Assembly: GCA_021613535.1 (NCBI GenBank)
Contig: CP075496.1
Span: 9,858,001-9,922,000, forward strand
Origin: Adineta vaga
Taxonomy: Eukaryota; Animalia; Rotifera
DNA length: 64,000 nt
Direction: 5' to 3'
A program made the translations under genes and the position numbers. Every line of letters starts with the position of its first letter. The first letter of the stretch is position 1. The notes under the pieces are model-generated. The model made no database searches. It saw only the letters and a program-made list of their open reading frames with translations, and had not been told where the DNA came from. Of this stretch, positions 8,829 to 54,396 are shown piece after piece.

Positions 8829-8851
8829 TTCTTCTTCTTCTTCTTCTTCTT
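8829..8851. repeat. (CTT)n microsatellite
   Basis: Directly visible trinucleotide run. Confidence 0.8.
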
Positions 8852-13769: not shown

Positions 13770-14246
13770 TGGATGGTTTATCCATATATGAAGGATGTAT
13801 AAAATCTTTAATCGAGAAAATGAAGGCACATCGTTTTTTTTTATGGAATAAAAGGACGTATGAAAATGACTGGGACTTCAGAAGTTTGATGATCATTGTG
13901 AACGAATTCTATCATGAATCAGTATTAATGGTATCAAAGCTGTTTATACAGTATATCAATTGAATCACTTTATTCTGTTATACTCAACGCCATAAACGTG
14001 AACTGTCAATTTCTGTGCGATATTTTGCCCAGAAACGATATAACCTTGTACTTGAAGAAAAATCAAGCTGTTACATATACCTTTCACTAAGAAGAGAACG
14101 TAGTTTCTGTCTCATATACGTGCTCTTCAAGTCAGAGTATACAATGATATAAAGAAAAAGAACCGGAGAGAAAAAAAGACAACTTATAAAGGTGCACATG
14201 TGCTTTGCAACATATTATCGTTGTTCATATCTATTTGTCTATAGTT

Positions 14247-16260: not shown

Positions 16261-16553
16261 TTATTTATTCAGAAAAAAATTGTGTCTTTCGTTTTATTGC
16301 TACTGTATTTTGAAGAGTAAATATGATTTATCATTGAATTTTATTGAAATAACTATAAAACGTTAAAATGCCTAGTTGTTCGATTGTTATCACATCGTAT
16401 TTTTTATAATTTTAACTCTTATCTTATTTTGTATATGACAATATCTGGTATCCTATAATTTATTGTGTTCATATACCATCATTTTCGATTTTGTTGCTAT
16501 CTATAGAGATGTTTATCATCAAACAAGTAATGAATAGATTTCGTTATTTTTCA

Positions 16554-18326
16554 TGATATATATTTTTCTGCTATAATTCACACTAATAGATTTTTGTGGT
16601 CTTAATCTTTTTAAGTGCTGGTTATCTTGAGATAGCTGCACATGTAAAGACTATTAAAAATAAGCAAAATGGTAATACTGTATCACCCGAGATTGGTCAA
16701 CATTTGGGCAACGATCAATTGCTCTTAGCAATACTCAATCTTTAACTAGTGCTTTATCAGTTCACTTGAGGTTTTCATTCAATGGTCAGTCAACTACGAC
16801 ACCTGGTTTTAGAAATGGTGGTTTCTATGTTATGTATATGTAGCATAGGTAGTAAACTAAACGTTGATTTTAGTGATGCGACTGGACAAATCATTTATGG
16901 TATAATCTCGATAGATGTACTCAAAGTGCCTGTTAATAATTGGTTCTATTTTACTTTTATTATTATACGGTCTTCAATGCGGCTCCGACTACCAAAAATC
17001 TTTTCTTTATTGAATTTTCATCAGGTAGTCGAGGCAGTTTTGAATTTAATTTAATATCTTGTTTTCCATCCACATATAAAAATCGACCGAATGGTGCTCG
17101 AATAGATATTGCACAAGCATTTGCTAATGTAAAACTTGGTTATGTTCGACTTCCTGATGGCAATGATCTTGAAAGTCCAACAATATTGGAACGTTTCATT
17201 TAAAATAATACATATGGATTGATTGAATTATTAACTTTTACGGAAGATATTGGTGCAATACCCGTTCTAGCAGTTTATGCTGGATATTCACTTAATGGTA
17301 AAGCCGTGCCTCAAGATCAATTGCAACCCTATATCAATGAAGTCATCAAAGAATTAGATTTTCTAACTGCATCTTCAGAAAATAATAGAATGGGTGCGCT
17401 ACGTAAACGTTTAGGTCGAAGACAACCATTCGAAATCCGATACATTGACATTTGTAATGAAGATTAGCTTGGTCCTATTCCAAAAACATATGGTTATCAA
17501 TGGTCAGCCTTTTACAATGCTCTTTCTCAACGATATCCGAATATCACATTTATTGCAACAACTACGCGTTATTAACTCTCCACCAACTGTCGATGATCAT
17601 GATTATCAAGTACCTTTATATTTTATAGAGAATTTTCGTCGTTATGAAAAGGTATCTCAATCTGGTCCAAAAGTACTCGTTGGAGAATTTGCAGTAATCA
17701 ATGATGATGATTCAAAAATTACTAATCCATTTGGACCTGGTCGATTGAGTTTTCCTTCAACTAAATCTGCTATTGCTGAATCTATTTATCGTATTGGTTT
17801 GAACGTAGTTCTGTTACTATTATTGGTGGATGTTATGCTCCTGTTCTTCAAACTATTGATAATACTCAATGAACACCAAATTTAATTATTTGTAATGCTG
17901 GCCTAGTGATAAAATCCACCTGATGTCTAGCTCAGAAAATGTTCGGTGAAAATCTTGGAAATCCTGTTCTACATTCTACAGCTACTAAGTAATAGTACCA
18001 TGACACATTCATTCATTCATTCAGAAAGGACAAGAAGGTGATGGTAAACTTGGAAATCTCTATTTTATTGCTACGAAACGTACTAATGATAATACACTGA
18101 TTGTTAAGTTTTCTAATGTAGATCACAGCGATATTCTTGTCAAAGCTCAAATTCAAGGTTCAATGGCATCAGCAACAGGTGTTGCTCACATTTTAACTGC
18201 AGTTCCAGGAATTGATTCTGCGACAGGACATAATACAATGGTCAATCCAAATGCAGCAGCGATTGTTACAATACCTGTTGTTGCCATTCTTAAAGGCATG
18301 AACGATATTTCTTTTGTTTGCTAATA
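16554..18326 (+). pseudogene. Alpha-L-arabinofuranosidase (GH51) pseudogene
   Basis: SCFPSTYKNRPNGARIDIA...VRLPDGNDLE, PVLAVYAGYSL, FEIRYIDICNED, DDHDY, VLVGEFAV, SAIAES; many stops and frameshifts. Boundaries approximate. Confidence 0.8.
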
Positions 18327-18598
18327 TTAAATTTTATCTTAAAAAACTCGTGTTTTTAAGTAAAACACGATTTTCTACAGACTCATTTGTTCATTAACTT
18401 AACCTATATTGTTGAATAAAACTGAAAGTGTGTTTTTAAAAAAGATCAATTACAAAATAACAGCAGATAACAAACAAATCTAAGAGAAATAAGACAACAA
18501 CTTTGTTCTAACAATCATTTATCTTTACAAAAGTATAAATTATAAGCAAGAATGAATAGCCAAATTAAATTTGAATTTGAATCAAATTGCTCTAGTAT

Positions 18599-22291: not shown

Positions 22292-22917
22292 AGATAAACA
22301 ATTCTTTTTTTTTCCTTTCATATCGGAATAATAAACGACTTCAATGGTCAGAAGAAAAGACAAAAATAAATGGCACACTTACCATCGATTCACGGAAAAG
22401 ATTCTAATACAACAAAAACACATTTTTTAACGAAGGAAGAAAAAGAAAAATGAAACGAGAGAAAAAATAAATCGTGAGAGTATGCGACACAAAGTTTTTC
22501 TTTCCAACCAATCTGTTTATTTGAAACGATGTATAGGCATTGTAAAAATCTTGTATTTGAGTTTCTTCCGAACAAAAATTCGATATCGTTTCTAACATTT
22601 TAGATCAAGATCAAATAGATTTTTCGGCTTCGGCAGTTCGTGAAGATAAAATCAATATATTCTTACTTTTATAATTTGGTCGACGAGAAAAACCCAGTAA
22701 ATTCCAACTTATTCCGTTTTCAATTGTGTTATAGTACAAACAAAATTTTTTTCTCTCATTTGAAGGATCACTTAAAAATTGTCTGTGAAATATAATTTTT
22801 AAGGAAAACGAAATATTCCAAGAAACGCATATAATAACAAACAAGAATAAACTACTATTTCATAATCATTTCTGTTAAATCATACTGTACCGATAGAAAT
22901 TCTATTCTTTGTTACAG

Positions 22918-25900
22918 ATGTCTACCGAAAACGATGCAAAACAATTAAAATTATGTTTAACAAAACTTATTGAATTGGTTGAAGAAACTCGAATAAAATT
23001 AAATTCGAACAAGGAGAAGTCACGAACTAAAACTACTGATGACAATCAACCACTAAGTTCAGATCCAGATGAGGATGCTTGCACATTTACATTAAATGAA
23101 GAAGAGAATCAATATCTCGACACTCTCGTTTCCAATGTTCAAGCTGTTCTCGATGAACATCTGCGACACCTTTCAAGACAATCCTCAAACTATCTCCTCG
23201 ACTTTCTTCATACTTATCATTATAATCGCACTAAGAAAACATTCAGTCCAACTCCTTCCATTGATCTATTGTATCCATTTCAACAAGATTTAAAAGGTCT
23301 TCTTGCAGCATTAGAAGCTTTCCCAGCTGCATTCAATGGTCAACTCGATATAGTCAAAACCTTCATTCAACAGTATCCAGCATATAAAAATAAACCAGGT
23401 CTTTGGGAAACAACTTTATTATATTCAGCAGCAAGAAATAATCATCTTCATCTTGTCAAGTATTTGATTGAAGAAGCACATTGTTCGGTTAATGCACAAA
23501 ATCAACGAGATGTAGCTTTCGCATTAGGTTCTAGTACAAAAGATTACAATCCTAAACCAGCAGCTGCATCAACACCACTTCATGCTGCTTGTTTTAACAA
23601 TCATTTGACCATTGTCGAATATCTTGTTGATCATGGTGCTGACTATTTTATTCACAATCAAGCACATGAAACACCGACTCAAAATGCTGAAAGTCGTTCC
23701 AAAATCAAGAAATTCTTTCAAGATTATCTTGTTCTTCGTTATTCGATGGATGCAACTGATCGATTACCTACCTGTCCAATCATGGATGAAGATCATCGAC
23801 CACTTCGTGATTCCATATGGGAATACAAACCCTTCCAAGATACAAAATGGTACAAGTTTTCCTCACCAGAAGCAACAGAACTACACAAAGCACTTCTGCC
23901 ATCAGAACAATTCCAAAAACAAGTCTATCTCAAAGTAGCCAAAGGATTATATAGTGCATCAATGATGGAATTCGTTCGATCAGGAAGACATGAACATGAT
24001 CAACAGAAAAATATGGCATGGATTCGATGTCGTGGTTCAAGCATTCTGAATTTTGATTGTTTTCCACTTTGGCAACTTATGATTATTCAATATGATAAAA
24101 GTGACAAAATCGACAAAGATACAACACCATCATTGAACATACAACATTTTCCTGGCATGACTGACATTAGTTTCAAACTTCATTTGAATAGTTGGTATAG
24201 TTGTGATGAAAATGTGAGTAAATCATTAGACGAAGCAATGAACTATCGACGAAAAGTCATTTCAATCAATATTCCTTATGTTGCTGATCAGTTGAAAATT
24301 AACTTGGAAACATTTGAATTTGCAAATAATGATAGGACACTTGTTGGTTATATTCGATGGATCCCTAAGCTTGTATCCAATAATGATAGTGATGAAAAGC
24401 GAATAGTTGATGTTGATAATTATCATCCGATGGCAACAGTTGAGCCAATACCATTGACGAGCAAACGATTGAAACAAATGTCGAAACTGAAGACGAACAA
24501 GAAGGAGAAGAAGAAGGAGAGTGATATGAAAGAAGAAGATGCAGAAAATGATCTTGGAGATGAAGATGATGATACTGGTCTTGATATGGCAACAATATTT
24601 GGAGTCGGAAATGATGACGAAGGCGATGATGATGATGAAGACGGAACTGAAGGTGAAGCCCATGACCAGATGGTGAGTAGATTAATTTTGCTGAGAACGT
24701 TTCTTGATCAATAGTTCTATTCAATAATATCCCTTTATCTTGCAATGAATTGAGTTCGTGTCTATCATATTCCAACCATTTTTCCTTTATGAAAGACATG
24801 TATTAATTTCTCTTTAGACTACCGTCGATATACTGGGAGAATGGAGTCTCACTGATCTAAATCATGAATATACTACAAGTAGTTCCGTAAGGGAACCAGC
24901 AGCCACTACTTCTGATCATAAAAAACATCGCGAACATTCAGATACGCTCGACGAACAGTTGTATAATCAACGCGCCGATGATACCGATACGGCCTCTATT
25001 GTCGAAAGAGTTAATCCTGTGTTACGAGACCAGGAAGCTGCCAAAATAGCGGATAAATTTGAATCAGAAGTTAAAAAACTGAAAGATCAAATAGAACAAG
25101 AAAAATTAAAATTTGAACAACATAAACAATCACAACAAAAACTATCCAAAGAGAAAGAACAGCAGTTGCAACGAACTAATGAAAAACTTGCACAACTTCA
25201 ACAACAACTACTTAGTCGACAAACTCAAGAGCAACAACTCAATAATTTAACAAAACAAATAAAGGCTATTGACTACGATACTATTGATAATCTTATTATC
25301 AAATTATATCTCGCCCCTAACCAAAATCATGTTATTGAGCATCTCAAATCTAAATATGAATTGGATAAATATTTCGTTGGAATACCATCTCTTACAATGA
25401 CAGAAAAACCTACTTACTATTGTGTATCATTGACAGGTGTACAAGCTCATCACGAAGAGTTTCGACTGATTCTCCGTCGACTACAACTATTATCAACTGT
25501 CGTTCAATCTGCTAAAGCTTTTTATCAACGACAACTGGATGAAGCAAATCGAAAAATTGTTTTCATAATGACTCAACAGATTCAAACTTCATCAAATTGG
25601 CGATTCTATACAAGGTACTTTCAAGAAATGACAAAGAAAAAGATTGATGAATTTGTCCGTCTATTCGACGAATACATCTCTCAAGAATCAAAAACAATAA
25701 TAGGTGATTGTATCAGACAATCTAATTTTCAGGCAAAATTTCAAGTACAAAAGCTGACAACAAGATACATGGCGAAAAAGCAGTTCATACCTGAGTTAGA
25801 ATTTATCAAGTACGAAGCGTTCAATGAATTTATCAAACAACAAGTCTTCTCCGAAAGAACCAAATTTGACAAAAAGCCATCCGCCAAATCCATGCAAACT

Positions 25901-28900
25901 ATGAACGAATTCATCGACAAAGTCAAAAAAGAATTACAAACAAACGACAAATATCATGGCTTTGACCTCGAACAACTAAGACTCATTCCAAAACTATTAC
26001 AACGAATCATGCTATATTATCGATGTTTTCTTCTTCAACTGCCTCTCTACGAATCATCAAAAGAACTGCTAGACAAAATAGAAAAAAGTACAGTTCTCAC
26101 CATTGCAACATCGACAGGATCAGGCAAATCAAGTCTCTTACCAGCTCTCCTCATTGCTGAAGGCTACGACAAAGTCATTGTCACACAACCTCGTCGATTA
26201 CCTTGTACAGCCATTTGCGAACGAGTCAATCAAACAATGATGACAACCCAAGGAACATTCAGACTAGCAGGATGGGCTGTAAGTGGTGATGACAACCATA
26301 CAGATGCTCCAATCCTATATCTGACTGATGGATTATTGAAAGAACGATTGTTACATGATGAAAACTTAGTTTCAGATAAATCAAAAGTCAACAAAGCCAT
26401 CGTTTTCTTCATCGATGAAGTTCATGAAAGATCAGTCAACATTGATCTATGTCTAGCGTTGATTGCTCGTCTTCTCACGAATAAACCACAACTCAAATCC
26501 AAAATCAAAATCATCATTTCATCAGCTACTCTTGATACATCTGTTCCAACACTATTTCGTAAAATTCCACAACTCAAATTCGAACAGTTTCAAATGGCTA
26601 GTCTTGGAACATTGCATCATGTCACTAAAATCGAAAGACCAAACCAAAATATTCTAGATCTTGTACAAGAACTATGCAAGAAACGACAACGACATGATCA
26701 AATCTTATGTTTCGTCAGTAGTGTCGCCGAAGTTCATCAATCTTGTCGACTTCTTTCAGAAATCAGTCGAGAAACACTTGTTGCTCTTCCACTTATTCAA
26801 TCTCAATCAGCCAGAGAGCAACAACAATACATCGAACATGGCACGATCTTCTTTTCAACAACTGTTGCCGAAACATCACTCACATTTCCATCTTTGACCT
26901 ACGTCATCGATACTGGAATGATTAACATTCCTGTCTATGATATCACCCTCAAACAAACCATTCTCAAAGAAGTTCGAGCAGCTGAATCAACAATCAAACA
27001 ACGTCTTGGACGATTAGGACGCACTAAACCTGGTGAATACTATGCATTGTATGATTACAAAGTGGAAGACAAGAAATTTCCCATACCACAGATCTGTCAA
27101 TCAGAACTATCAAATGTTGAACTCTCATTGAGAAGATCATCGATCAAACAAGGACTCAATTACATCAAACAATTCTTACCTGATTCACCATCTCCTCAAG
27201 CAATCGGTGTCGCAACCAATGAACTTCAACGATTGAGTAAGTGCCTCTTTTCCATCTTTCATTTCAATGTTCATCATTCTTGCTCTCGTTCTCTTTCAGA
27301 TATTTTAGATGCAAAAGAAAATCTCACATCGATCGGGATGAGTATTGCACAACTACCTGATTTTGGATCATTGTCAATGTCAAAAGCAGTTCTAGCTGCT
27401 TTGGATAAACATCATTGTGGTCGTGATCTCATTGTTCTTTCGTCGATTCTTGGTGTTCTCAACACATCATCAGTGTTGAAAGCTCTTCCCGATGCAATGA
27501 AACGACCCGAGGGTGATTTCATGAGTTTATTGACAGTGATGAACGAGATTCTGCTAGTGAGAGAAAGTGTTCCATCCAATCAATTCAGATTAGACAAAGT
27601 TTGTCAGGCAAAAGGACTTGTCAACATAGCACATGTCTTGAAACAAGCATTAAACAGATATAAAAATCTAGAACGAGATTTTAAACGATCTCCAGAATAC
27701 CAAACAAAAGCATACATGTCCAGTTGTCATTGGCCGTCGATAGCTAAATCATTATTGGAAGGATATGGTGATAATGTATTTGTATCAATGAAAGAATTAC
27801 AAGGCAAAACTCATCTTTTCACTCGATATTCATCCACAACAAAAGAAGATGTAGCTGTTCTCGATCTTCAATCGACGCTGACTCGTGCCATCACTGCTGC
27901 ACCTGTAGCTTTGATTCTTGCACGTGATATTCGTTTTTCATCATCCATTCGTGCTACAGCTGTACTTTCATTTGTGGGTGAAATCAAGTCACAATGGATC
28001 GATCACTCAATTAACAGAAAAATCACTCTCAATACTGCGGAAGAAACCAGACTCAATTCGAATAACATTCTCGCCTCGGCCAAACAAGCTTTTCCTAAAG
28101 CCCAAATGCAACTTAGTAGTCAAATTGTCGTTCTTCAAGGCATAGCTGGCCAAGTTCTAGATGCCGAATTATATATCCTAAGACAATTAATTGTCGAAAC
28201 CAAATTCAAATTACAAAATCCCCATTCATCGACTACAAGTACTGATTACAAAAGAGTGGCAAGAAATTTAGAAAGTGTTGCAAAAACGTCATGGATATTT
28301 CAGCCAATGATCTGGAGATGGGAAGCACAACGACAAGTCAAAATTACTGTCAATACTAGTCTTGTGAAAGATGAATGTGAAGTGACCATTGTCGGAAGAG
28401 ACTCACAAAATCAACTTGTTCAAAACGAATTTAACTCATTTCTTGGATGGCTCAAAATGTGTGCTGTCATTCGACATCCCAATGCTGGTAGGTCAACATC
28501 GACATATCAACGAACATTCGAAATAGAATATGAAAGTATATAATATGTTCTCTCTTGTTTAGGCATACCACCACGTATTCTAAAACCACAAATGCGAAAG
28601 AAATGCTTAGATATCGAAGAAAGAATTGCACGCGTCACTGACAGCAAACGAACTTCCATCGAATTGTGGAAAAGTTTGAAAGGTTCAAAAGCAACACGAG
28701 AAACGCGAATGGAAGTTGTGGCATGGATAGCTGTCACTCAGTTTGATTGTCGATTAGAAGGTGGATTTGTTCGCGATTGGATTGTTGGAAATTACAGTAA
28801 TCGACCAACTACTGCTCCCTCTACATGGATCACTTACGTGAAGAACAAAGCTGGCGACATGATCCCTTATCTCGACAAAGGTTTTATACCATCAGATCTT

Positions 28901-29972
28901 GATTGTCATCTTCCATTAAACAGATATTTTGATATTGACAAGTTTCTTGATCATTTACATCGATATCAGATCGAATGTGAAGTAATACGAGAAGATTGGC
29001 GATATGTCCTTTTACTTGATAAAAACACAAGTACTGGTGCATTTACAATGGATCTAATCGAACCTCATGTTGCTCTCACACATGATCGAATCGATTTTGA
29101 TGTTAGTAATCTGTCAGTGGAAAAAGATTATACGAAAGAACTTGGAATGAGAGTTGACATTGAACGTAAACCCTATTCAATCGATCTCGAAATCATTGTT
29201 GATAACATCAAAAACAAACGATTTCAAGTTCTGCGTCCCATTGATTTTCAAGTTACAGATCGGATAAAAAAAATGCAAAGTCGCGGATGGACACAGCTTG
29301 GTGAACCGATGCATGTTGTTCCTGATCCACCACCGAAATATCATGTCGTACTTGTTCCATTACCCCCATCATCGCCCTTGTATCAATTATTGGTTCAAAC
29401 AATGAAAACATATCTTGGAAATCAAGCAGATGTCAAGTCAATCGAACAAATTCGAAATCCATTGATTGAAGATGCATATCTATCGATGAAAAAGATCATT
29501 GCAAAGCAATGTGCAGGTCAAAATCCGAATGAACGTGAATTGTTTCATGGAACGAGTGGTGAAGCTATTGATGGAATATTAAATGATGGATATGATGATC
29601 GATATTGGGGTACGAAGTTTGGTAAAGGCAAATTTGGTGAGTGTGCCTGTATGAATGAGAAATTCTCTTTTGTAAAATTATTTTTTCTCAATAGGTCATG
29701 GTGCTTATTTTGCTGACAATCCTAGTGTTTCTCACAAATATACAGAAGCTGATCCGAGTAATCAAACACGTATCATGTATTATAACAGGGTGACATTAGG
29801 GAAAGAGTCTGTTATTCAAGAGAATAATCCAGAACTAGTTTCTGCTCCCAAAGGTTATCATTCAATACATGCAACATTTGCGGGACATCCACATTCTGAT
29901 GAATATATTGTTTATCGATATGGACAAGCAATGCCGTATCTCAGAATAACATATACCGCTCCGATTTCATAG
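22918..29972 (+). CDS. Ankyrin-WWE-DEAH helicase-nucleotidyltransferase-PARP fusion protein, copy 1 (5 exons, about 2237 aa)
   Basis: Exons 22918-24672, 24818-27236, 27300-28487, 28563-29636 and 29695-29972 are joined by GT-AG introns in compatible phase (total 6714 nt). Motifs: TTLLYSAARNNH and TPLHAACFNNH (ANK); WEYKP..KWYKF (WWE-like); TGSGKS, TQPRR, DEVHER, SAT, TTVAETSLT, QRLGRLGR (helicase); GGFVRD..DLD..RIDFDVSNL (NTase); LFHGT, GHGAYFA, DEYIVY (PARP). Confidence 0.85.
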
Positions 29973-30141
29973 TTATATTTTGTATATTTTTTAATACGAA
30001 TCGAACTACTTATATATCAAAACGCATGTTAGCATGAGTTAAGAAATGTCACACATTCATTTGTCTGCTTTCAAGTTCTAGATACTAATGGAAGTGAGAA
30101 TGAAAGACAAAGAATGAACAAACATATTCTTTATACTTGTC

Positions 30142-32064
30142 TCATTTCTTTCTTAATAACTTTTGAATCGATGTTATTAATTGAGGCATTTTTTGTCCGC
30201 TTTTCGTCGCTATTCCGTTTTTATATTTTGCTCTTCTTTCTTGTTGATCGATCCATATTTGAATATATGATGATCTCTCCACATCCCGTACGATCACATA
30301 TGTTGATGGAAATTGATTTTCAATCCAACGAATAAGTTCATTTTCTGTCGAAATCATTTTTCTTTCATTCCATCGATCATCACTACATCGAACATTCAAT
30401 AATCGCACATTTTCCATTCTTTCAACCAAATCAATAATACTTTTTCGATCTTCGATTTCTACGGTCACCACTTCACATTGTTGTGCAAGTGATGAAGTAC
30501 AAAATGTCAGACATTCCTCTCGACTAAATACATCATTCCAGTTGAACATTCCATTGATTTCAATACGGCGAATCGATTGACTCTTTAATACGCATAGCTT
30601 TGGTAAACATTTTTGCCAAAAAATAATTCGTAATGAATACAATCGAAGTGATCGATCACATAATCTTTGTAGTTGAGAATAACCAGATGAAATTTGCATT
30701 CGTACAGTTAATGAAAGCAAATTATCAAAAGTCAAATTACTTGAATTCAATACATCCACTTCAAATGGAAATATTACATCAAGAACACGAATATGTCGAT
30801 ATCTATTACATATGATACTGAAACTATGTAAATGTAAAGTTTTTCGATGATTGTTTGTGAACATTTCAACACATTCATATGATCTATAATTATCGACATC
30901 ATTATCTTCTTCTTCTTCTTCTTTGTGATCTTTCTTCGAACATGTCGATTCTGTCTGATATTCATTAAAATAATGAATATTTTTGAATACAAATGGAAGT
31001 GTATAAAGATAAGCATATGTCGTAATTTCAGATGATTCCCAATCACATCGGACAAACCATCGATGTTCATCAATCCAATATTTTGTACGAAAACTATCTA
31101 CCAACGTATCAACATGTTCTTTAACTTCGACGTCATCTCCTGATATTTCTATTTGCATTTTGAGATGAAATATTTTCAGATGACGAACATGTTCAAGGAG
31201 AATTTCTTTCCATTGATGTCCATCCACATATAAATCAACTGTTTCAATCGTTAATTGTCGAAGATTAGGAAGGTGTTTAAAAAGATTTGTCATCGATTCG
31301 ATACAACCTCGAAAGAATAGTCGTAATGATGTTATTGATGGGATGGTACATGTGAGAGTGTCACTTTTTGAATGAGAATACACAGTAGTCGAAAGTTGTT
31401 GCAGATGCGGTGTTGAAGATGTTAATAAATAAGATAAACTATCGAAATCACACGAAATATTTTCAATCAATAAATTACGAATTGATGTCGATGTTACTAC
31501 GAATGATGATGAAGATCGTGGAAATATTGAAACATGAGAAAATGAGATGTGATTCAATGTAATACCATTAAGATCGCAATGTATTAATGATGAAATCGAC
31601 CAAATATTATTGAATAAATCAACGATAGGTTGCTTTTGTTTTTGATCAATAGAACAATCAATAATGAAGAGATGAGTAAGTTGACGAAGAGTGCGACAAA
31701 GAGATATCATCGGAATTAATATTTGAAGTGATGAAATGTGATGTAATGAAAGCGATTGTAAATGAATGAAGCGATTAAGATCATATCCACGAGATGAAAG
31801 AAGATCACATAATTGTGGTGTTTCTTCATTTGATAAATAAAGTGAACGAATAGAATAAATCATTGCTGGAAAATATTGTTTACACATCAAATCAAAATCA
31901 TGTTTGGAAATACGACGAAGATTTAACTGATGAGTTTGTAAATGATTGAACAAAAGATAATTGAAACGGTTGTTTAATCCAAAGAATGCACGAAATAGAT
32001 GAACAACATCGATGAACGAGAAGAAATGAAAGAAAAGTTCATTTGGAAGGATTTCAAGACGCAT
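30142..32064 (-). CDS. F-box domain / degenerate LRR protein
   Basis: Start MRLEILPNELFFHFFSF..LFRAFFGLNNRFN at 32064; shares WFVRCDW, LYTLP and CEV blocks with its paralogs. Confidence 0.8.
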   Translation of the reverse strand: MRLEILPNELFFHFFSFIDVVHLFRAFFGLNNRFNYLLFNHLQTHQLNLRRISKHDFDLMCKQYFPAMIYSIRSLYLSNEETPQLCDLLSSRGYDLNRFIHLQSLSLHHISSLQILIPMISLCRTLRQLTHLFIIDCSIDQKQKQPIVDLFNNIWSISSLIHCDLNGITLNHISFSHVSIFPRSSSSFVVTSTSIRNLLIENISCDFDSLSYLLTSSTPHLQQLSTTVYSHSKSDTLTCTIPSITSLRLFFRGCIESMTNLFKHLPNLRQLTIETVDLYVDGHQWKEILLEHVRHLKIFHLKMQIEISGDDVEVKEHVDTLVDSFRTKYWIDEHRWFVRCDWESSEITTYAYLYTLPFVFKNIHYFNEYQTESTCSKKDHKEEEEEDNDVDNYRSYECVEMFTNNHRKTLHLHSFSIICNRYRHIRVLDVIFPFEVDVLNSSNLTFDNLLSLTVRMQISSGYSQLQRLCDRSLRLYSLRIIFWQKCLPKLCVLKSQSIRRIEINGMFNWNDVFSREECLTFCTSSLAQQCEVVTVEIEDRKSIIDLVERMENVRLLNVRCSDDRWNERKMISTENELIRWIENQFPSTYVIVRDVERSSYIQIWIDQQERRAKYKNGIATKSGQKMPQLITSIQKLLRKK

Positions 32065-32336
32065 CAGTAGATACTTTTGTTTCTTAAAAAAGAAGAATAG
32101 ACATAATATCTCTCTCTGTCTCTCTGTTCGATACTCAAATATCATAGAGTAAAAGAAAACAAATAAACGTGTTTGCTTATGTACGCATAGTGTGTGTCTG
32201 TCTTTTTTTTCGATTGAATATATATATATATCATTATGTGATGATTGTAAGAAGAGAAAAAATCGTATCAACGTTTTACTTTCTTTTTTTATCCTATAAT
32301 CACATGCATTATATGCACTTCTTATCGATAAAACTT

Positions 32337-34310
32337 TTATTTATACATTATGTATGATGTATCCATTGAAAATAACTGTCGAAATGATCGCATAAATTGT
32401 GATAGTTTGTTTGCCTGAGTTGATGTGTATATCGATTGATCTGGTACAATTCTCTTCGATTTTGATTCTCGATTGATCCATAATTGAACACGTGATGTAT
32501 AATGAAGATCTCGTCGAATGACGTATGTTGATGGAAGATGTTCTTGTAACCATTCGATCAATTCGTCTCGTGAACATGGTGATAATAGTGATGATTTTTC
32601 GACGAAATTATATCTATCCTCTTCACATTCAACTATCAACACACGAAGATTCGATAGTTGTTCAATTAAATCGATGATACTTATTCGACTTTTCACTCCG
32701 ATCAACAAAACTTCACATTTCATCACAAGTGATGATGGTAATGATGAATGAACAATCACTAAACATTCTTCTTTCGAATAATAATAACATCGACGATCGA
32801 GTCGACTGTTCAAAAGATCAATTCGTTGAATAGGATGTGCAACTGTTAATTGAAATAATCTTGTTGAAAAACAATTTTTCATTAATATTTGACAGCGAAA
32901 TGAACAGAGACCAGATGAACATGACCGATCGAAGATTTCTTGTAATTGATCATAACCAGATGATTTGTAAATACAAACATTTAGTGACTTCAAATGATCA
33001 AATGACGGAAAATGTAATAAGATTTGTTCATCTATGAGTGGAACGTAGATATTGAGAATACTAACATAAGGAAACTGAACAGGGAATAGATGAAAATTAT
33101 CTACTAACATTGTTTCAATACTTTCATAATCAACTCTTTTTACTTTATCATATGACCAATCGTGTTTATCTTGAAAGTGATCGCAGGTCGATCTAGTTGA
33201 TGATACATTTGTATAATCAAAATGATCAAATGCATAGGGTAATGTATATAATGTCACACATTTATATGGATCTGATCGATTCCAATGACATCGAACATAC
33301 CAATCATGTTCTCTACACCAAAATGAACTTTTATATGTTAATAGTAATTCATCAACAATATCTTCAATATCATGATAATCTTCACGATAATCCATTTCCA
33401 TTTTCATTTCAAATTTTTTCAATTGACAAAGATAGTTTTCGATCAAATCTTGCCAAACATGTCCATCCAAATGAATTCGTAATGTTGTAATGCGAAGATA
33501 ATTGAGATACGGAAGATGTTTGAATAAATCAAGGAGTGATGGAATTGATCCACCAAAACTAATTGTCATTGATGTAAGTGATGAACTCATCAGTGTCATA
33601 CGATCATCAGACGAATAAGAATAAACAGTAATATGACGGAGACGATAGAGATAAGGTGTATACTGACAAAGATGAGAAAGAGAATGTAAATTGTATGACA
33701 TATTCTTCAGTGATAGATCTTCGATCAATGGTGATGTTGTTGTTATTATTGGAGATATCAATAGTGTGCTATCAGTTGTTGGAATACCATCTAGATGACA
33801 TCGTCGAAGTTTTTCTAAACTCCACATTCTATTCCACAAATCATTTATCTTCTCTCTATCGATAGCATTATTTTTCTTTCCATCATGATATTTGCTGCTA
33901 ATTGTGAGATGAGTAAGATGTGCAAGGGATTGACATTGACAAATGATATCATATAATATTTCGAATGTAGAGATGCTGAACAGTGAAAGTGATTGTAAAT
34001 GAATAAATTGATTGAGATTAAAACTTTGTGTACGAAGAAGAAGAAGGACAGGTAAATCAATTGTTTCATCATCATCTGAGAGATCAAGTGAAACGAATTG
34101 ATCAATAAGGGATGGAAGACATCGATGACAAAGATCATCAAAATGTTCTTTGGATATGGATCGAAGATTGAGTGAATGATATCGGAAATGATGGAAAATT
34201 AAATGGTTGAAACGAATATTTAATCCAAAGAAAGATCGAAGAAGATCAACACTGTGAAAATATGTGAATAAATCGAGAAGCAATTCGTTTGCTAATGTTT
34301 CTAGTTGCAT
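32337..34310 (-). CDS. F-box domain / degenerate LRR protein
   Basis: MQLETLANELLLDLFTYF..LLRSFFGLNIRFN; same architecture as the adjacent tandem paralog. Confidence 0.8.
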   Translation of the reverse strand: MQLETLANELLLDLFTYFHSVDLLRSFFGLNIRFNHLIFHHFRYHSLNLRSISKEHFDDLCHRCLPSLIDQFVSLDLSDDDETIDLPVLLLLRTQSFNLNQFIHLQSLSLFSISTFEILYDIICQCQSLAHLTHLTISSKYHDGKKNNAIDREKINDLWNRMWSLEKLRRCHLDGIPTTDSTLLISPIITTTSPLIEDLSLKNMSYNLHSLSHLCQYTPYLYRLRHITVYSYSSDDRMTLMSSSLTSMTISFGGSIPSLLDLFKHLPYLNYLRITTLRIHLDGHVWQDLIENYLCQLKKFEMKMEMDYREDYHDIEDIVDELLLTYKSSFWCREHDWYVRCHWNRSDPYKCVTLYTLPYAFDHFDYTNVSSTRSTCDHFQDKHDWSYDKVKRVDYESIETMLVDNFHLFPVQFPYVSILNIYVPLIDEQILLHFPSFDHLKSLNVCIYKSSGYDQLQEIFDRSCSSGLCSFRCQILMKNCFSTRLFQLTVAHPIQRIDLLNSRLDRRCYYYSKEECLVIVHSSLPSSLVMKCEVLLIGVKSRISIIDLIEQLSNLRVLIVECEEDRYNFVEKSSLLSPCSRDELIEWLQEHLPSTYVIRRDLHYTSRVQLWINRESKSKRIVPDQSIYTSTQANKLSQFMRSFRQLFSMDTSYIMYK

Positions 34311-47287: not shown

Positions 47288-50200
47288 CTAAGCGGTATAT
47301 GTTATTCTGAGATACGGCATTGCTTGTCCATATCGATAAACAATATATTCATCAGAGTATGGATGCCCCGCAAATGTTGCATGTATTGAATGATGTCCTT
47401 TGGGAGCAGAAACTAGTTCTGGATTATTCTCTTGAATAACAGACTCTTTCCCTAATGTCACCCTGTTATAATACATGATACGTGTTTGATTACTCGGATC
47501 AGCTTCTGTATAACTGTGAGAAACACTAGGATTGTCAGCAAAATAAGCACCATGACCTATTGAGAAAAAATAATGTTACAAAAGAGAATTTCTCATTCAT
47601 ACAGGCACACTCACCAAATTTGCCTTTACCAAACTTCGTACCCCAATATCGATCATCATATCCATCATTCAATATTCCATCAATAGCTTCACCACTCGTT
47701 CCATGAAACAATTCACGTTCATTCGGATTTTGACCTGCACATTGCTTTGCAATGATCTTTTTCATCGATAGATATGCATCTTCAATCAATGGATTTCGAA
47801 TTTGTTCGATTGACTTGACATCTGCTTGATTTCCAAGATATGTTTTCATTGTTTGAACCAATAATTGATACAAGGGCGATGATGGGGGTAATGGAACAAG
47901 TACAACATGATATTTCGGTGGTGGATCAGGAACAACATGCATCGGTTCACCAAGCTGTGTCCATCCGCGACTTTGCATTTTTTTTATCCGATCTGTAACT
48001 TGAAAATCAATGGGACGCAGAACTTGAAATCGTTTGTTTTTGATGTTATCAACGATGATTTCGAGATCGATTGAATAGGGTTTACGTTCAATGTCAACTC
48101 TCATTCCAAGTTCTTTCGTATAATCTTTTTCCACTGACAGATTACTAACATCAAAATCGATTCGATCATGTGTGAGAGCAACATGAGGTTCGATTAGATC
48201 CATTGTAAATGCACCAGTACTTGTGTTTTTATCAAGTAAAAGGACATATCGCCAATCTTCTCGTATTACTTCACATTCGATCTGATATCGATGTAACTGA
48301 TCAAGAAACTTGTCAATATCAAAGTATCTGTTTAATGGAAGATGACAATCAAGATCTGATGGTATAAAACCTTTGTCGAGATAAGGGATCATGTCGCCAG
48401 CTTTGTTCTTCACGTAAGTGATCCATGTAGAGGAGCAGTAGTTGGTCGATTACTGTAATTTCCAACAATCCAATCGCGAACAAATCCACCTTCTAATCGA
48501 CAATCAAACTGAGTGACAGCTATCCATGCCACAACTTCCATTCGCGTTTCTCGTGTTGCTTTTGAACCTTTCAAACTTTTCCACAATTCGATGGAAGTTC
48601 GTTTGCTGTCAGTGACGCGTGCAATTCTTTCTTCGATATCTAAGCATTTCTTTCGCATTTGTGGTTTTAGAATACGTGGTGGTATGCCTAAACAAGAGAG
48701 AACATATTATATACTTTGATATTCTATTTTGAATGTTCGTTTATATGTCGATGTTGACTTACCAGCATTGGGATGTCGAATGACAGCACACATTTTGAGC
48801 CATCCAAGAAATGAGTTAAATTCGTTTTGAACAAGTTGATTTTGTGAGTCTCTTCCGACAATGGTCACTTCACATTCATCTTTCACAAGACTAGTATTGA
48901 CAGTAATTTTGACTTGTCGTTGTGCTTCCCATCTCCAGATCATTGGCTGAAATATCCATGACGTTTTTGCAACACTTTCTAAATTTCTTGCCACTCTTTT
49001 GTAATCAGTACTTGTAATCGATGAATAGGGATTTTGTAATTTGAATTTGGTTTCGACAATTAATTGTCTTAGGATATATAATTCGGCATCTAGAACTTGG
49101 CCAGCTATTCCTTGAAGAATGACAATTTGACTACTGAGTTGCATTTGGGCTCTAGGAAAAGCTTGTTTGGCCGAGGCGAGAATGTTATTCGAATTGAGTC
49201 TGGTTTCTTCCGCAGTGTTGAGAGTGATTTTTCTGTTAATTGAGTGATCGATCCATTGTGACTTGATTTCACCCACAAATGAAAGTACAGCTGTAGCACG
49301 AATGGATGATGAAAAACGAATATCACGTGCAAGAATCAAAGCTACAGGTGCAGCAGTGATGGCACGAGTCAGCGTCGATTGAAGATCGAGAACAGCTACA
49401 TCTTCTTTTGTTGTGGATGAATATCGAGTGAAAAGATGAGTTTTGCCTTGTAATTCTTTCATCGATACAAATACATTATCACCATATCCTTCCAATAATG
49501 ATTTAGCTATCGACGGCCAATGACAACTGGACATGTATGCTTTTGCTTGGTATTCTGGAGATCGTTTAAAATCTCGTTCTAGATTTTTATATCTGTTTAA
49601 TGCTTGTTTCAAGACATGTGCTATGTTGACAAGTCCTTTTGCCTGACAAACTTTGTCTAATCTGAATTGATCGGATGGAACACTTTCTTTCAGTAGCAGA
49701 ATCTCGTTCATCACTGTCAATAAACTCATGAAATCACCTTCGGATCGTTTCATTGCATCGGGAAGAGCTTTCAACACTGATGATGTGTTGAGAACACCAA
49801 GAATCGACGAAAGAACAATGAGATCACGACCACAATGATGTTTATCCAAAGCAGCTAGAACTGCTTTTGACATTGACAATGATCCAAAATCAGGTAGTTG
49901 TGCAATACTCATTCCGATCGATGTGAGATTTTCTTTTGCATCCAAGATGTCTGAAAGAGAACGAGAGCAAGAATGATGAATATTGAAATGAAAGATGGAA
50001 AAGAGACACTTACTCAATCGTTGAAGTTCATTGGTTGCAACACTGATTGCTTGAGGAGATGGTGAATTAGGTAAGAATTGTTTGATATAATTGAGTCCTT
50101 GTTTGATCGATGATCTTCTCAATGAGAGTTCAACATTTGATAGTTCTGATTGACAGATCTGTGGTATGGGAAATTTCTTGTCTTCCACTTTGTAATCATA

Positions 50201-53200
50201 CAATGCATAGTATTCACCAGGTTTAGTGCGTCCTAATCGTCCAAGACGTTGTTTGATTGTTGATTCAGCTGCTCGAACTTCTTTGAGAATGGTTTGTTTG
50301 AGGGTGATATCATAGACAGGAATGTTAATCATTCCAGTATCGATCACATAGGTCAAAGATGGAAACGTGAGTGATGTTTCGGCAACAGTTGTTGAAAAGA
50401 AGATCGTGCCATGTTCGATGAATTGTTGTTGCTCTCTGGCTGATTGAGATTGAATAAGTGGAAGAGCAACAAGTGTTTCTCGACTGATTTCTGAGAGAAG
50501 CCGACAAGATTGATGAACTTCGGCGACACTACTGACGAAACATAAGATTTGATCATGTCGTTGTCGTTTTTTGCATAGTTCTTGTACAAGATCTAGAATA
50601 TTTTGGTTTGGTCTTTCGATTTTAGTGACATGATGCAATGTTCCAAGACTAGCCATTTGAAACTGTTCGAATTTGAGTTGTGGAATTTTACGAAATAGTG
50701 TTGGAACAGATGTATCAAGAGTAGCTGATGAAATGATGATTTTGATTTTGGATTTGAGTTGTGGTTTATTCGTGAGAAGACGAGCAATCAACGCTAGACA
50801 TAGATCAATGTTGACTGATCTTTCATGAACCTCATCGATGAAGAAAACGATAGCTTTGTTGACTTTTGATTTATCTGAAACTAAGTTTTCATCATGTAAC
50901 AGCCGTTCTTTCAATAATCCATCAGTCAGATATAGGATTGGAGCATCTGTATCTTTGTCATCACCACTTACAGCCCATCCTGCTAGTCTGAATGTTCCTT
51001 GGGTTGTCATCATTGTTTGATTGACTCGTTCGCAAATGGCTGTACAAGGTAATCGACGAGGTTGTGTGACAATGACTTTGTCGTAGCCTTCAGCAATGAG
51101 GAGTGCTGGTAAGAGACTTGATTTGCCTGATCCTGTCGATGTTGCAATGGTGAGAACTGTACTTTTTTCTATTTTGTCTAGTAGTTCTTTTGATGATTCG
51201 TAGAGAGGCAGTTGAAGAAGAAAACATCGATAGTATAACATGATTCGTTGTAATAGTTTTGGAATGAGTCTTAGTTGTTCGAGGTCAAAGCCATGATATT
51301 TGTCGTTTGTTTGTAATTCTTTTTTGACTTTGTCGATGAATTCGTTCATGGTTTGCATGGATTTGGCGGATGGCTTTTTGTCAAATTTGGTTCTTTCGGA
51401 GAAGACTTGTTGTTTGATAAATTCATTGAACGCTTCGAACTTGATAATTTCTAACTCAGGTATGAACTGCTTTTTCGCCATGTATCTCGTTGTGAGCTTC
51501 TGTAGTAGCGCTGCTGTTTGATAATCAGGATCTGTAATCGTTTCATCAACCATTGTTTTCGATTGTTGAGTGATGTATTCGTCGAATAGACGGACGAATT
51601 CATCAATCTTTTTCTTTGTCATTTCTTGAAAGTATCTTGTATAGTATTTCCAGTCAGATGACGATGGAACTTTTTTCATTATGATTCGATTGATGGAGTT
51701 AGAAGTGGTATATAATTCATGATTATAGGTATTCTTGGCATGTCGCACGTTTTGTGAAAAACTTTTCATGCGATTGAGAAGTATTCTGAATTCTTCGTGA
51801 TGAGCTTGTACACCTGTCAATGATACACAGTAGTAATTAGATTTTTCTGTCATTGAAAGAGATGGTATTCCAATGAAATATTTATTCATTTGATGTTTGG
51901 ATTTCAAATGTTCGATGACATGTCGAAGTTTACTGAAGAGAAATGTTTTGACAATGAGTGAATCGATGTTATCATAGTCAATGGCTTTGATTTGTCTTAC
52001 TACATCCTTGAGCTCTTGTTCATGAGTTTGTCGACTGAGTAATTGTTGTTGAAGTTGTGCAAGTTTTTCATTAGTTCGTTGTAACTGTTGTTCTTTCTCT
52101 TTGGATAGTTTTTGTTGTGATTGTCTATGTTGTTCAAGTTTTGACTTTTCTCTTTCAATTTGATCTTTTAATTCTTTAACTTCTGATCCTAATTTCTCCC
52201 TGAACTCAGCAGCTACCTGGTCTCGTAACACAGGATTAACTCTTTCGACAATAGAGGCCGTATCGGTATCATCGGCGCGTTGATTATAAAACTGTTCGTC
52301 GAGCGTATCTGAATGTTCGCGATGTTTTTTATGATCAGAAGTAGTGGCTGCTGGTTCCCTTACGGAACTACTTGTAGTATATTCATGATTTAGATCAGTA
52401 AGACTCCATGTACCTTGATTGACAATTGATTCCTAAAGTAAGAAAGGAAAAATGTTATAATATTTTCTTTTCATTGGAATAGTTCTGGTGAAGTAAATAA
52501 ATTTGAATATTTTGAAAATCTTGCAGGATATTCGATATACAGATAAAAGTAATATTTTTCTCCTTTTCTAACATGCTAATCTCATGCGCACTCTCGATCT
52601 GATCATTCTGCTTTTATGAAATATCCTCATTGATGTTTTGAACTTACTCGCGTATATTGGTGCGAGGAATCATCGTCCTCATCACCACCTTCATCATCAT
52701 CATTTCCAATTGACAATGCTGCTCCTATCTCGATACCATCATCGTCATCTTCATCTCCAAGATCATTTTCTTCATCTTCTTCTTTCATATCACTCTCCTT
52801 CTTCTTCTCCTTCTTGTTCGTCTTCAGTTTCGACATTTGTTTCAATCGTTTGCTCGTCAATGGTATTGGCTCAACTGTTGCCATCGGATGATAATTATCA
52901 ACATCAACTATTCGCTTTTCATCACTATCATTATTGGATACAAGCTTAGGGATCCATCGAATATAACCAACAAGTGTCCTATCATTATTTGCAAATTCAA
53001 ATGTTTCCAAGTTAATTTTCAACTGATCAGCAACATAAGGAATATTGATTGAAATGACTTTTCGTCGATAGTTCATTGCTTCATCTAATGATTTACTCAC
53101 ATTTTCATCACAACTATACCAACTATTCAAATGAAGTTTGAAACTAATGTCAGTCATGCCAGGAAAATGTTGTATGTTCAATGATGGTGTTGTGTCTTTG

Positions 53201-54396
53201 TCGATTTTGTCACTTTTATCATATTGAATAATCATAAGTTGCCAAAGTGGAAAACAATCAAAATTCAGAATGCTTGAACCACGACATCGAATCCATGCCA
53301 TATTTTTCTGTTGATCTTGTTCATGTCTTCCTGATCGAACGAATTCCATCATTGATGCACTATATAATCCTTTGGCTACTTTGAGATAGACTTGTTTTTG
53401 GAATTGTTCTGATGGCAGAAGTGCTTTGTGTAGTTCTGTTGCTTCTGGTGATGAAAACTTGTACCATTTTGCATCTTGGAAGGGTTTGTATTCCCATAGG
53501 GAATCACGAAGTGGTCGATGATCTTCATCCATGATTGGATAGGTAGGTAATCGATCAGTTGCATCCATCGAATAACGAAGAACAAGATAATCTTGAAAGA
53601 ATTTCTTGATTTTGGAACGACTTTCAGCATTTTGAGTCGGTGTTTCATGTGCTTGATTGTGGATAAAATAGTCAGCACCATGATCAACAAGATATTCGAC
53701 AATGGTCAAATGATTGTTAAAACAAGCAGCATGAAGTGGTGTTGATGCAGCTGCTGGTTTAGGATTGTAATCTTTTGTACTAGAACCTAATGCGAAAGCT
53801 ACATCTCGTTGATTTTGTGCATTAACCAAACAATGTGCTTCTTCAATCAAATACTTGACAAGATGAAGATGATTATTTCTTGCTGCTGAATATAATAAAG
53901 TTGTTTCCCAAAGACCTGGTTTATTTTTATATGCTGGATACTGTTGAATGAAGGTTTTGACTATATCGAGTTGACCATTGAATGCAGCTGGGAAAGCTTC
54001 TAATGCTGCAAGAAGACCTTTTAAATCTTGTTGAAATGGATGTAAGAGAGCAATAGAAAGAGTGGGACTGAATGTTTTCTTAGTGCGATTATACTGATAG
54101 GTATGAAGAAAGTCGAGAAGATAGTTTGAGGATTCTGTTGGAAGTTGTGGTAGATGTTCATCGAGAACAGCTTGAACATTGAAAGTGAGAGTGTCGAGAT
54201 ATTGATTTTCTTCTTCATTTAATGTAAATGTACAAACGTTACTGGTCAACTGAGAGTTGTGGATACTGGTGGATGTATTTTTATCTGTTTGTAATTGCTT
54301 GTCTGATAAGTTTAGTCTTCGAAGGCATTCTTCAACTAATTTAATAATTTCAGTCAAACTTTCTTTTAATCTTCGTTCGCCACTCGTGGTTGACAT
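47288..54396 (-). CDS. Ankyrin-WWE-DEAH helicase-nucleotidyltransferase-PARP fusion protein, copy 2 (inverted paralog, 1-nt frameshift near 48432)
   Basis: Same motifs and intron positions as copy 1 (intron 1 at 52433..52647). One base is missing in a CCC run (gctcctctaca versus gctccctctaca in copy 1). Confidence 0.85.

Follow-up and report, generated by a model that had tools for sequence, protein, structure and literature searches.

A transcribed Adineta vaga gene predicted to join ankyrin repeats, WWE-like modules, a DEAH/RHA helicase, a Pol-beta-type nucleotidyltransferase and a PARP domain on one chain

PARPs that carry RNA-binding modules, such as ZAP, PARP12 and PARP14, are central to antiviral defense in vertebrates, and two other kinds of component that recur in nucleic-acid immunity are helicases and nucleotidyltransferases. 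PARP14 carries KH domains, and the catalytic triad of both PARP12 and PARP14 is H-Y-I/L/Y. Helicases of the DEAH/RHA type move along single-stranded RNA in the 3′-to-5′ direction, and two such enzymes, HrpA and DHX34, act in RNA surveillance. In the TRAMP complex a non-canonical nucleotidyltransferase and a 3′-to-5′ RNA helicase cooperate on one RNA 3′ end. Here we describe a gene of the bdelloid rotifer Adineta vaga whose product is predicted to bring PARP, helicase and nucleotidyltransferase activities together. The gene, referred to below as copy 1, occupies positions 22918..29972 on the plus strand of a 64,000-nucleotide stretch of contig CP075496.1 (G000:C4:9858001-9922000 in the labels of the assembly), which was analyzed as a whole and is called the window; a second, inverted copy lies on the minus strand. 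Copy 1 is a genuine transcribed and spliced five-exon gene encoding a single protein of 2237 residues, and, as judged from its sequence, the catalytic signatures of the helicase, the nucleotidyltransferase and the PARP are all intact on one expressed chain. Three predicted enzymatic activities on such a chain, together with membership of a multi-copy family in animals noted for how unusually they handle foreign nucleic acids, make the protein of interest for ADP-ribosylation, RNA surveillance and invertebrate immunity.

The window is AT-rich overall (27-32% GC), with two richer blocks of 33-38% GC at 22-30 kb and, on the other strand, at 48-54 kb. Long open frames lie on the plus strand at 22909-24714, 24959-28543 and 28592-29716, with mirror images on the minus strand, and open frames of 585, 1223 and 357 codons are far beyond chance in DNA of ~30-38% GC. 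Joining 22918-24672, 24818-28487, 28563-29636 and 29695-29972 gives one open frame of 6777 nucleotides that starts at the ATG at 22918, nine codons downstream of an in-frame stop, and runs to a single terminal stop (TAG, 29970-29972) across three predicted introns of 145, 75 and 58 nucleotides, all with GT..AG ends. The initial annotation of this DNA, made from the letters alone, had spliced four open reading frames into one frame of 6714 nucleotides; the single frame and its three introns are upheld by transcripts, whereas the exons it listed total 6777 nucleotides, and the figure of 6714 is reached only with a fourth intron.

Evidence for splicing comes from RNA-derived Logan contigs of four runs from three studies (X1, X3, X13 and X14), aligned to 24400-30100; the run records carry no RNA label, and their RNA origin is read from the spliced contigs themselves. 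The third intron (28488..28562, 75 nucleotides, GT..AG, phase 1) and the fourth (29637..29694, 58 nucleotides, GTGAGT..AATAG, phase 1) are removed in all four runs, with joints at 28487/8-28562 and 29636/7-29694 and with up to 255 letters aligned on each side of the former. At the first intron (24673..24817, 145 nucleotides, GTGAGT..TTTAG, phase 0) an X1 contig links 24672 with the first bases of exon 2, and an X13 contig starting at 24817 has an unaligned end made up of the final 16 bases of exon 1. Transcript evidence across 24673-24817 and 28488-28562 was what the initial annotation had proposed as a check, and both introns are removed in these public contigs. The additional intron is the second, 27237..27299, 63 nucleotides with GT..AG ends, in frame and without a stop; it is spliced out in contigs of X1, X3 and X14, and its copy-2 form in contigs of X13 and X14, and the 21 residues it would encode are missing from homologues. 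Because its removal shortens the frame of 6777 nucleotides, the coding sequence is 6714 nucleotides, or 2237 residues, in five exons. A single X1 contig (record 5, 1671 nucleotides) spans 27827-29572 and so connects the tail of the helicase with the KH-like modules, the nucleotidyltransferase and the beginning of the PARP domain; further contigs cross the last intron, and one from X1 extends to 30048.

It is very improbable that separate neighboring genes for the ANK-WWE, helicase, nucleotidyltransferase and PARP parts have only been made to look like one by the gene model. Such an artefact could draw on the fact that no contig covers the full length and that many database predictions of relatives are partial. 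Against it, every exon junction is bridged by canonically spliced contigs from the three studies, and the spliced frame has no internal stops. The Pfam PARP profile is split exactly at the last intron, with positions 11-86 at the end of exon 4 and 86-162 in exon 5. The exon pieces map in order and almost seamlessly onto single proteins annotated independently at full length in Rotaria sordida (P0189 and P0190) and Rotaria sp. (P0161 and P0006). In the same genome one paralogue (G000:C5:2166253-2167041, plus strand) lies within an uninterrupted frame of 2114 residues, and intron content therefore varies between paralogues. The joined frame was used for length and stop count; the searches and structure predictions described below were done on single exons.

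The PARP domain closes the chain. Its first half, with the His of LFHGT, lies at the end of exon 4 (29348..29636), and its second half, with the Tyr of GAYFA and the Glu of SDEYIVY, fills exon 5 (29695..29972) up to the stop. The Pfam model scores exon 5 alone at 35.5 bits (cutoff 26.7; 1e-8) and exon 4 at 24.7 bits, and the two matched segments of the profile are contiguous. By sequence the first half is nearest to PARP12 and PARP14 (3e-7) and the second to PARP4 and tankyrase (6e-7). The H-Y-E triad is present, its Glu aligned with DDEFVVY of PARP4 and YAEYVIY of tankyrase, and it recurs in at least 23 of 37 relatives.

The helicase core occupies the end of exon 2 (26030..27236, plus strand). 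It is matched by Pfam DEAD (3e-8) and Helicase_C (1e-8), and all of the superfamily 2 (SF2) motifs are there: GSGKS (motif I), TQPRR (Ia), DEVH (II), SAT (III), TTVAETS (V) and QRLGRLGR (VI). Its matches in the PDB are Prp2, HrpA, DHX37, Prp43 and DHX8 (4e-36 to 1e-30), with Prp2 and HrpA both at 4e-36. The core continues into exon 3 (27300..28487, 395 residues), which was modeled with AlphaFold2 from 33 relatives at a predicted local distance difference test (pLDDT) score of 91. Residues 1-235 of this exon (27302..28006) comprise the winged-helix, ratchet (HA2) and OB domains: in structure comparison with VIA the model matches the helicase-associated domain of DHX8 (3i4u) with Z 21.2 and a root mean square deviation (rmsd) of 2.7 over 207 residues, and HrpA with Z 19.4; Foldseek finds Prp22 and Prp43 at ~1e-8, and the profile matches DHX15 at E 0.003. 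The Pfam HA2 and OB models gave no match on this tail of copy 1. Together these results confirm a complete DEAH/RHA enzyme (RecA1, RecA2, winged helix, ratchet and OB) with an intact signature. Outside the family its nearest helicases are DHX34 and bacterial HrpA, at 26-31% identity.

Directly after the OB domain, residues 236-295 and 297-385 of exon 3 (28007..28456) form two predicted modules with the beta-alpha-alpha-beta-beta-alpha fold of type I KH domains. In the predicted model they match the KH domains of PNPase, Nova-1, MEX-3C, N4BP1 and KHNYN with Z 7.6-9.0 and rmsd 1.6-2.9 over 56-65 residues, a range that may also reflect a common structural arrangement. We call them KH-like only, because the GXXG loop is absent. 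These modules, like the intron at 27237-27299 and the frameshift in the second copy described below, had gone unmentioned in the initial annotation.

Between the KH-like modules and the PARP domain, residues 1-260 of exon 4 (28565..29344, plus strand) are predicted to form a nucleotidyltransferase of the Pol-beta superfamily, with the motif GGFVRDW followed by D111-L-D113 and D163. The AlphaFold model is confident (pLDDT 92; predicted template modeling score, pTM, 0.90). Its best structures in VIA are 3wfo (Z 9.7), FAM46B (8.9), 3aql (8.9), 3h37 (8.8) and 4wby (8.2), over ~160-177 aligned residues; we take 3aql to be a bacterial poly(A) polymerase, which its title does not say. Foldseek places the class II A-, CC- and CCA-adding enzymes and FAM46C (TENT5) on top, at 7e-4 to 6e-3, and all of the top structural matches are nucleotidyltransferases of the Pol-beta superfamily. 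An exhaustive HMMER search with the domain returned 158 relatives, many of them 1900-2500 residues long. Conservation, counted on an alignment of 34 relatives, is strong at the catalytic positions: G66 (34/34), G67 (32/34), D111 (32/34) and D113 (34/34), with D or E at position 163 in 32 of the 34. F68, R70 and D71 of the GGFVRDW motif are invariant and D177 nearly so. The predicted secondary structure puts the hG[GS] turn, the DxD and the third acidic residue on the expected elements. Most members have a gap of ~40 residues between the GG and the DxD; in P0118, a distant member, the spacing is of the short, classical kind (GGFVRDYVINDEEANDIDAW).

Sequence comparison places the domain less readily. 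It has no sequence match in the PDB, and the family profile finds nothing among PDB sequences even at E 10. Pfam returns only a weak match to DUF5769, a family without assigned function, and the same weak match occurs in 23 of 34 family members; DUF5769 is not mentioned in the literature searched. Membership in PolyA_pol is not indicated, with one of 34 members matching, at E 0.064, and the class II motifs B to E, among them the nucleotide-selecting RRD and EDxxR, are not recognized in the alignment of 34 relatives. A body or tail domain is lacking, since the 260-residue domain directly adjoins the PARP. The nearest predicted structures outside rotifers are uncharacterized giant-virus proteins (Foldseek ~1e-7 in BFVD; template modeling (TM) score 0.62 in the ESM Atlas). 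The model and the alignment thus support a Pol-beta-type fold with its catalytic signature, nearest in shape to the class II CCA-adding and poly(A) enzymes and to TENT5. The template-independent nucleotidyltransferase proposed in the initial annotation therefore stands as to fold (in the predicted model) and catalytic motif (across the 34 relatives), without a match to a curated sequence model; a failure of this segment or of the PARP segment to match its fold had been named as a ground for rejecting the architecture, and both match, the former by AlphaFold2, VIA and Foldseek and the latter by Pfam.

Lower in the structural ranking, at Z 4-5, come Pol X enzymes, a cGAS-like receptor, a CD-NTase and MenT toxins. 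They bear on whether the nucleotidyltransferase, once triggered by RNA, might make a free oligonucleotide or cyclic messenger in the manner of OAS, cGAS-like receptors and CD-NTases, with the PARP as effector or second output. The superfamily fold is the same, the matches include a cGAS-like receptor (8gjw, Z 5.0) and a CD-NTase (7to3, Z 4.5), the family is multi-copy, and sensor-effector fusions are common in immune proteins. Both structures, however, fall well below the class II and TENT5 matches, OAS is absent from the top 50 structural matches and no receptor for such a signal was identified, so that we regard synthesis of a nucleotide signal as unlikely.

The same ranking bears on a role in DNA damage or recovery from desiccation. 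Under that reading DNA breaks would be where PARP and WWE work, the substrate for unwinding by the helicase would be DNA or an RNA-DNA hybrid, and DNA ends would be lengthened by the Pol-beta-type domain in the way of terminal transferase or Pol mu. Some DEAH/RHA helicases (DHX9 and DHX36) act on DNA structures, and Pol lambda, Pol mu and TdT have the same fold. The Pol X matches are nevertheless weak (Z 4.2-4.8; Foldseek TM 0.15-0.21) compared with Z 8-10 for the RNA-specific class II enzymes and TENT5, and the Pfam results contain no break-sensing module (zinc fingers, WGR or BRCT). In the accessible parts of Moris et al. 2024 (PMC10809525), 17 A. vaga PARP-domain genes are up after radiation and nine after rehydration, and ADP-ribosylation is an enriched term of the stress response, as a role in DNA damage would have it. 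The PARP genes named in those parts are of the PARP2/3, PBZ-PARP and tankyrase types and not helicase fusions, and the one helicase-WWE-PARP gene visible there, FUN_000628, which belongs to a different family, goes down and not up. On balance a DNA-directed function has a low probability in our estimation.

The N-terminal part of the protein is encoded by exon 1 (22918..24672, 585 residues), which comprises a variable stretch of 130 residues, the ankyrin repeats (ANK), a tandem WWE-like region and an acidic tail. The ankyrin block (residues 137-247; 23326..23658, plus strand) clears the curated cutoff with Ank_2 at 71.8 bits (cutoff 27.3; 7e-20) and Ank at 55.5 bits (4e-15), and its PDB matches are designed ankyrin proteins (DARPins) and the ankyrin protein FEM1C. 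With the Pfam and PDB matches and the motifs given above, the presence of ANK, a DEAH/RHA helicase and PARP on one protein agrees with the initial annotation. Its WWE assignment needs qualification. The region at residues ~296-378 and 385-485 (23803..24372) scores 18.4 bits in copy 1, short of the Pfam WWE cutoff of 21.1, and is clear in paralogues, where Pfam WWE matches at homologous positions in 12 of 29 (best 5e-13; P0008 at 1e-10). W32, W42 and W157 of the region are invariant in the family alignment; its family profile found no match among PDB sequences. This conserved tryptophan-rich pattern suggests two tandem WWE modules. Between the acidic end of exon 1 and the helicase core, exon 2 (24818..27236) holds a low-complexity stretch, a coiled coil and a variable helical region without recognizable family, followed by RecA1 and RecA2; for the variable region a feature search of the ESM Atlas returned only low-recognition coiled-coil and dynein-tail look-alikes, which we take as uninformative. 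Elsewhere in the window, an open reading frame of 525 residues at 14205-15779 (plus strand) has strong ankyrin repeats (Ank_2 1e-27), and its likeness to the ankyrin block of copy 1 is at the repeat level only (35% over 88 residues).

The second copy is an inverted, transcribed paralogue with the same exon structure (47288..54396, minus strand; ATG at 54396, stop at 47288-47290). Exon identity with copy 1 is 90.7-99.5% and that of the three 3′ introns 95-98%, whereas intron 1 is not alignable between the copies. That of copy 2 (52433..52647, minus strand, 215 nucleotides, GTAAGT..TTTAG, phase 0) nonetheless has the same place and phase, and an X13 contig contains exactly the predicted 116 letters between alignable flanks; this intron, one of those that the initial annotation noted as shared by the copies, is thereby confirmed to the base. 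Spliced X13 contigs carry copy-2 variants at 29737-29894 (copy 1 numbering) and the copy-2 3′ end, from which it follows that copy 2 is expressed as well as copy 1. As assembled here, copy 2 has lost one C (CCC to CC, near 48433, opposite 28817 of copy 1), which breaks the frame of the nucleotidyltransferase exon; the deletion is seen in no RNA contig of the four runs, although contigs cannot prove its absence. That copy 2 is an allele of copy 1 was considered and rejected: the two are found on the same contig in opposite orientation, separated by 17 kb, in what we take to be a haploid, chromosome-level assembly of Adineta vaga. One X1 contig, spliced at intron 1, is identical to copy 1 through exon 1 and ~45 bases of exon 2 (24842-24862 onwards) and then continues with 162 letters unlike both copies; it may represent a third haplotype or paralogue in a hypervariable region.

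Divergence between the copies is unevenly spread along the gene. Over the first 130 residues (22918-23307) synonymous divergence (dS) is 0.50 and nonsynonymous divergence (dN) 0.22, and over the first 400 residues of exon 2 (24818-26017) the values are 0.38 and 0.16; for the ANK, WWE, helicase, KH-like, nucleotidyltransferase and PARP blocks they are 0.01-0.05 and 0.001-0.02, respectively. Identity is 95-99.5% across the enzymatic blocks and the three 3′ introns. Since near-identical enzymatic blocks stand beside strongly diverged variable regions, this mosaic suggests gene conversion of the former or exchange of the latter.

The genome contains at least 13 loci with the nucleotidyltransferase domain and at least nine with the family helicase, with paralogues on five contigs and 40-65% identical. 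All relatives with a species name come from bdelloids, namely Adineta vaga, A. steineri, A. ricciae, Didymodactylos carnosus and four or five species of Rotaria. A housekeeping role in ribosome biogenesis, splicing or mRNA decay, with copies multiplied in a degenerate tetraploid, would suit a complete DEAH/RHA enzyme that is expressed in four of four runs and whose nearest named relatives are HrpA, DHX34, Prp43/DHX15 and DHX37. Housekeeping helicases, though, are normally single-copy and conserved across animals, while the named full relatives here are all bdelloid, 9-13 loci exceed what tetraploidy explains and the paralogues are just 40-65% identical. Strong divergence of the variable regions between near-identical enzymatic blocks, and a frameshift in one copy, also fit poorly, and we hold a housekeeping function to be quite improbable. 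A transposon or viral insertion as the origin of the gene was set aside in view of its spliceosomal introns, host-like GC content, expression and paralogues on five contigs.

Beyond bdelloids the helicase-nucleotidyltransferase-PARP core occurs in an MMETSP transcript (P0041), in a JGI metagenome (P0155, 2416 residues followed by a PARP open reading frame) and on two ENA metagenome contigs, L001 (54% GC) and L002 (48% GC); some of the non-bdelloid relatives are without ANK and WWE or without PARP. On L001 the relative (P0040, 10001-15898) is followed at 16446-18473 (plus strand) by a gene with WWE and Exo_endo_phos (endonuclease/phosphatase) domains, and WWE may there be supplied in trans. Family members are filed in databases as "unnamed", "RNA helicase" or "Poly [ADP-ribose] polymerase", and they may be among the PARPs counted in stress studies of bdelloids. 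The architecture is not described in the literature searched, in agreement with the statement in the initial annotation that no characterized protein carries all five domains; uncharacterized helicase-WWE-PARP fusions lacking the nucleotidyltransferase are annotated in this genome. Perina et al. 2014 mention A. vaga for PARG only. In the accessible portion of the PMC10809525 supplement, FUN_000628 is annotated with Helicase_C, HA2, WWE and PARP, with best matches in Macrostomum lignano and Mizuhopecten yessoensis; as these are a flatworm and a scallop, uncharacterized fusions of this kind occur in other spiralians too. FUN_000628 is probably the CCCH zinc finger-DEAH helicase-PARP gene that we find near 2.22 Mb (L003, G000:C1:2218000-2227999; minus strand, 4575-9799). 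Its helicase is 26% identical to that of copy 1, and no nucleotidyltransferase is detected in it (hhalign probability <1%). The present family is set apart from such fusions by the inserted nucleotidyltransferase and the ANK front end. Three more distant DEAH-type helicases, 30-33% identical, at G000:C5:3419227-3420330 (plus), G000:C1:14769065-14770183 (plus) and G000:C5:234895-236010 (minus), sit in open frames of 2217, 2044 and 1717 residues, respectively, and may be further giant helicase fusion proteins.

Just downstream of copy 1 are two tandem paralogous open reading frames (30145-32271 and 32340-34310, both minus strand; 709 and 657 residues, 36% identical) in which an F-box-like N-terminal motif and leucine-rich repeats can be made out by eye, with no Pfam match. 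A Glyco_transf_61 frame (5218-6465, minus strand) and an FG-GAP repeat frame (61372-62184, plus strand) are apparently ordinary neighbors.

Considered together, the modules invite a reading of the copy 1 protein as a single-chain enzyme of RNA surveillance or defense, to which we give an even chance. The multi-copy, lineage-expanded and mosaic pattern of the family, together with the analogy with ZAP, PARP12 and PARP14, directs this reading toward foreign or transposon RNA. Engaging an RNA would fall to the helicase and the KH-like modules. The nucleotidyltransferase next to them could then add untemplated nucleotides to the RNA 3′ end, either as a mark or, TRAMP-like, as a loading tail for the helicase; it would be well placed to meet the same 3′ end, because the OB domain of a 3′-to-5′ helicase and the two KH-like modules directly precede it. 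Targets of ADP-ribosylation by the H-Y-E PARP would be the PARP itself, partner proteins or possibly the ends of RNA. The ADP-ribose product would be read by the WWE modules, and partners or specificity would come from the ankyrin repeats and the variable regions. The function put forward in the initial annotation, RNA sensing with tailing or signal synthesis and feedback through WWE, is likewise a reasonable hypothesis by analogy. A more specific version is possible but doubtful: an RNA-end-modifying immune enzyme on a single chain, whose helicase would thread foreign or transposon RNA, whose nucleotidyltransferase would tail the 3′ end and whose PARP would ADP-ribosylate the RNA or bound proteins, with the fast-diverging regions setting target specificity and the core, which is shared with GC-rich, eukaryote-like metagenomic contigs, representing a widespread, undescribed eukaryotic defense module.

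Several observations weigh against assigning the protein to RNA surveillance or defense. The GXXG RNA-binding loop is absent from the KH-like modules, in which the loop is SNNI, and no GXXG is conserved in the family. The nucleotidyltransferase is without a significant match to any curated sequence model, and it could act on RNA, DNA, a protein or free nucleotides. The WWE region of copy 1 stays under the Pfam cutoff (E 0.003). The whole copy 1 transcript is not covered by any single contig, and for this reason shorter alternative isoforms are possible; copy 2 may be a pseudogene. A response of A. vaga PARP genes as a group to radiation and rehydration, as reported in the accessible parts of PMC10809525, fits a DNA-damage role as well. 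If the activities are nonetheless coupled, the protein would illustrate a way of linking RNA tailing to ADP-ribosylation, and would open a practical route into the function of a family of nucleotidyltransferases otherwise known from uncharacterized giant-virus proteins only.

Comparison with known systems places the protein between several of them. Within the same genome, FUN_000628/L003 is alike in being an uncharacterized helicase-WWE-PARP fusion, as far as its entry in the accessible supplement goes, and differs in having CCCH fingers instead of ANK, a helicase only 26% identical and no detected nucleotidyltransferase. The helicase shares all core motifs and the winged helix-ratchet-OB tail with HrpA, DHX34 and Prp43/DHX15, but at ~26-31% identity, and it is fused to enzymatic domains that none of them carries. 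The nucleotidyltransferase finds its best structural matches, over the head and part of the neck in the predicted model, in the class II CCA-, CC- and A-adding enzymes, bacterial poly(A) polymerase and TENT5/FAM46, and like the class II enzymes it has a GGxVRD-type helix-turn motif followed by a DxD and a third acidic residue; unlike them, it has an insertion of ~40 residues between GG and DxD in most members, lacks body and tail and has no significant sequence-model match. Its nearest predicted structures outside rotifers are those of giant viruses (cedratvirus, moumouvirus, mimivirus L685 and klosneuvirus), and its weak Pfam match is DUF5769. The viral Pol-beta-like proteins are short, or carry a fused RING, F-box or BTB domain, and among the matches listed they are never joined to a helicase or PARP.

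TRAMP, in which Trf4/5 is the poly(A) polymerase, Mtr4 the helicase and Air1/2 the further component, serves as a working analogy only, and no homology is claimed beyond the superfamily level; its parts are separate proteins, its helicase is Ski2-like and not of the DEAH type, and it has no PARP. With tankyrase (PARP5a/b) and PARP4 the rotifer protein shares ANK repeats and a PARP with H-Y-E, the second half of its PARP domain being nearest to both. In contrast to tankyrase, it has ~3-4 ankyrin repeats in one short block, not five ankyrin repeat clusters, no SAM domain is found by Pfam, so the tankyrase layout does not apply, and ~1700 residues of helicase, KH-like and nucleotidyltransferase modules separate ANK from PARP. 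The zinc-finger PARPs (PARP12, PARP13/ZAP and PARP7) and PARP14, for which antiviral roles are documented in the accessible parts of PMC11784840 and PMC9720839, have a similar order, in which an RNA-binding front end is followed by WWE and a C-terminal PARP, and PARP12 and PARP14 are the closest by sequence to the first half of the copy 1 PARP domain. Compared with these proteins, the rotifer chain has a DEAH/RHA helicase and KH-like modules, with putative RNA binding, in place of CCCH fingers, its WWE-like region is placed well upstream, beside ANK, its PARP is preceded by an inserted nucleotidyltransferase, and, in distinction from PARP12 and PARP14, its catalytic triad is H-Y-E.

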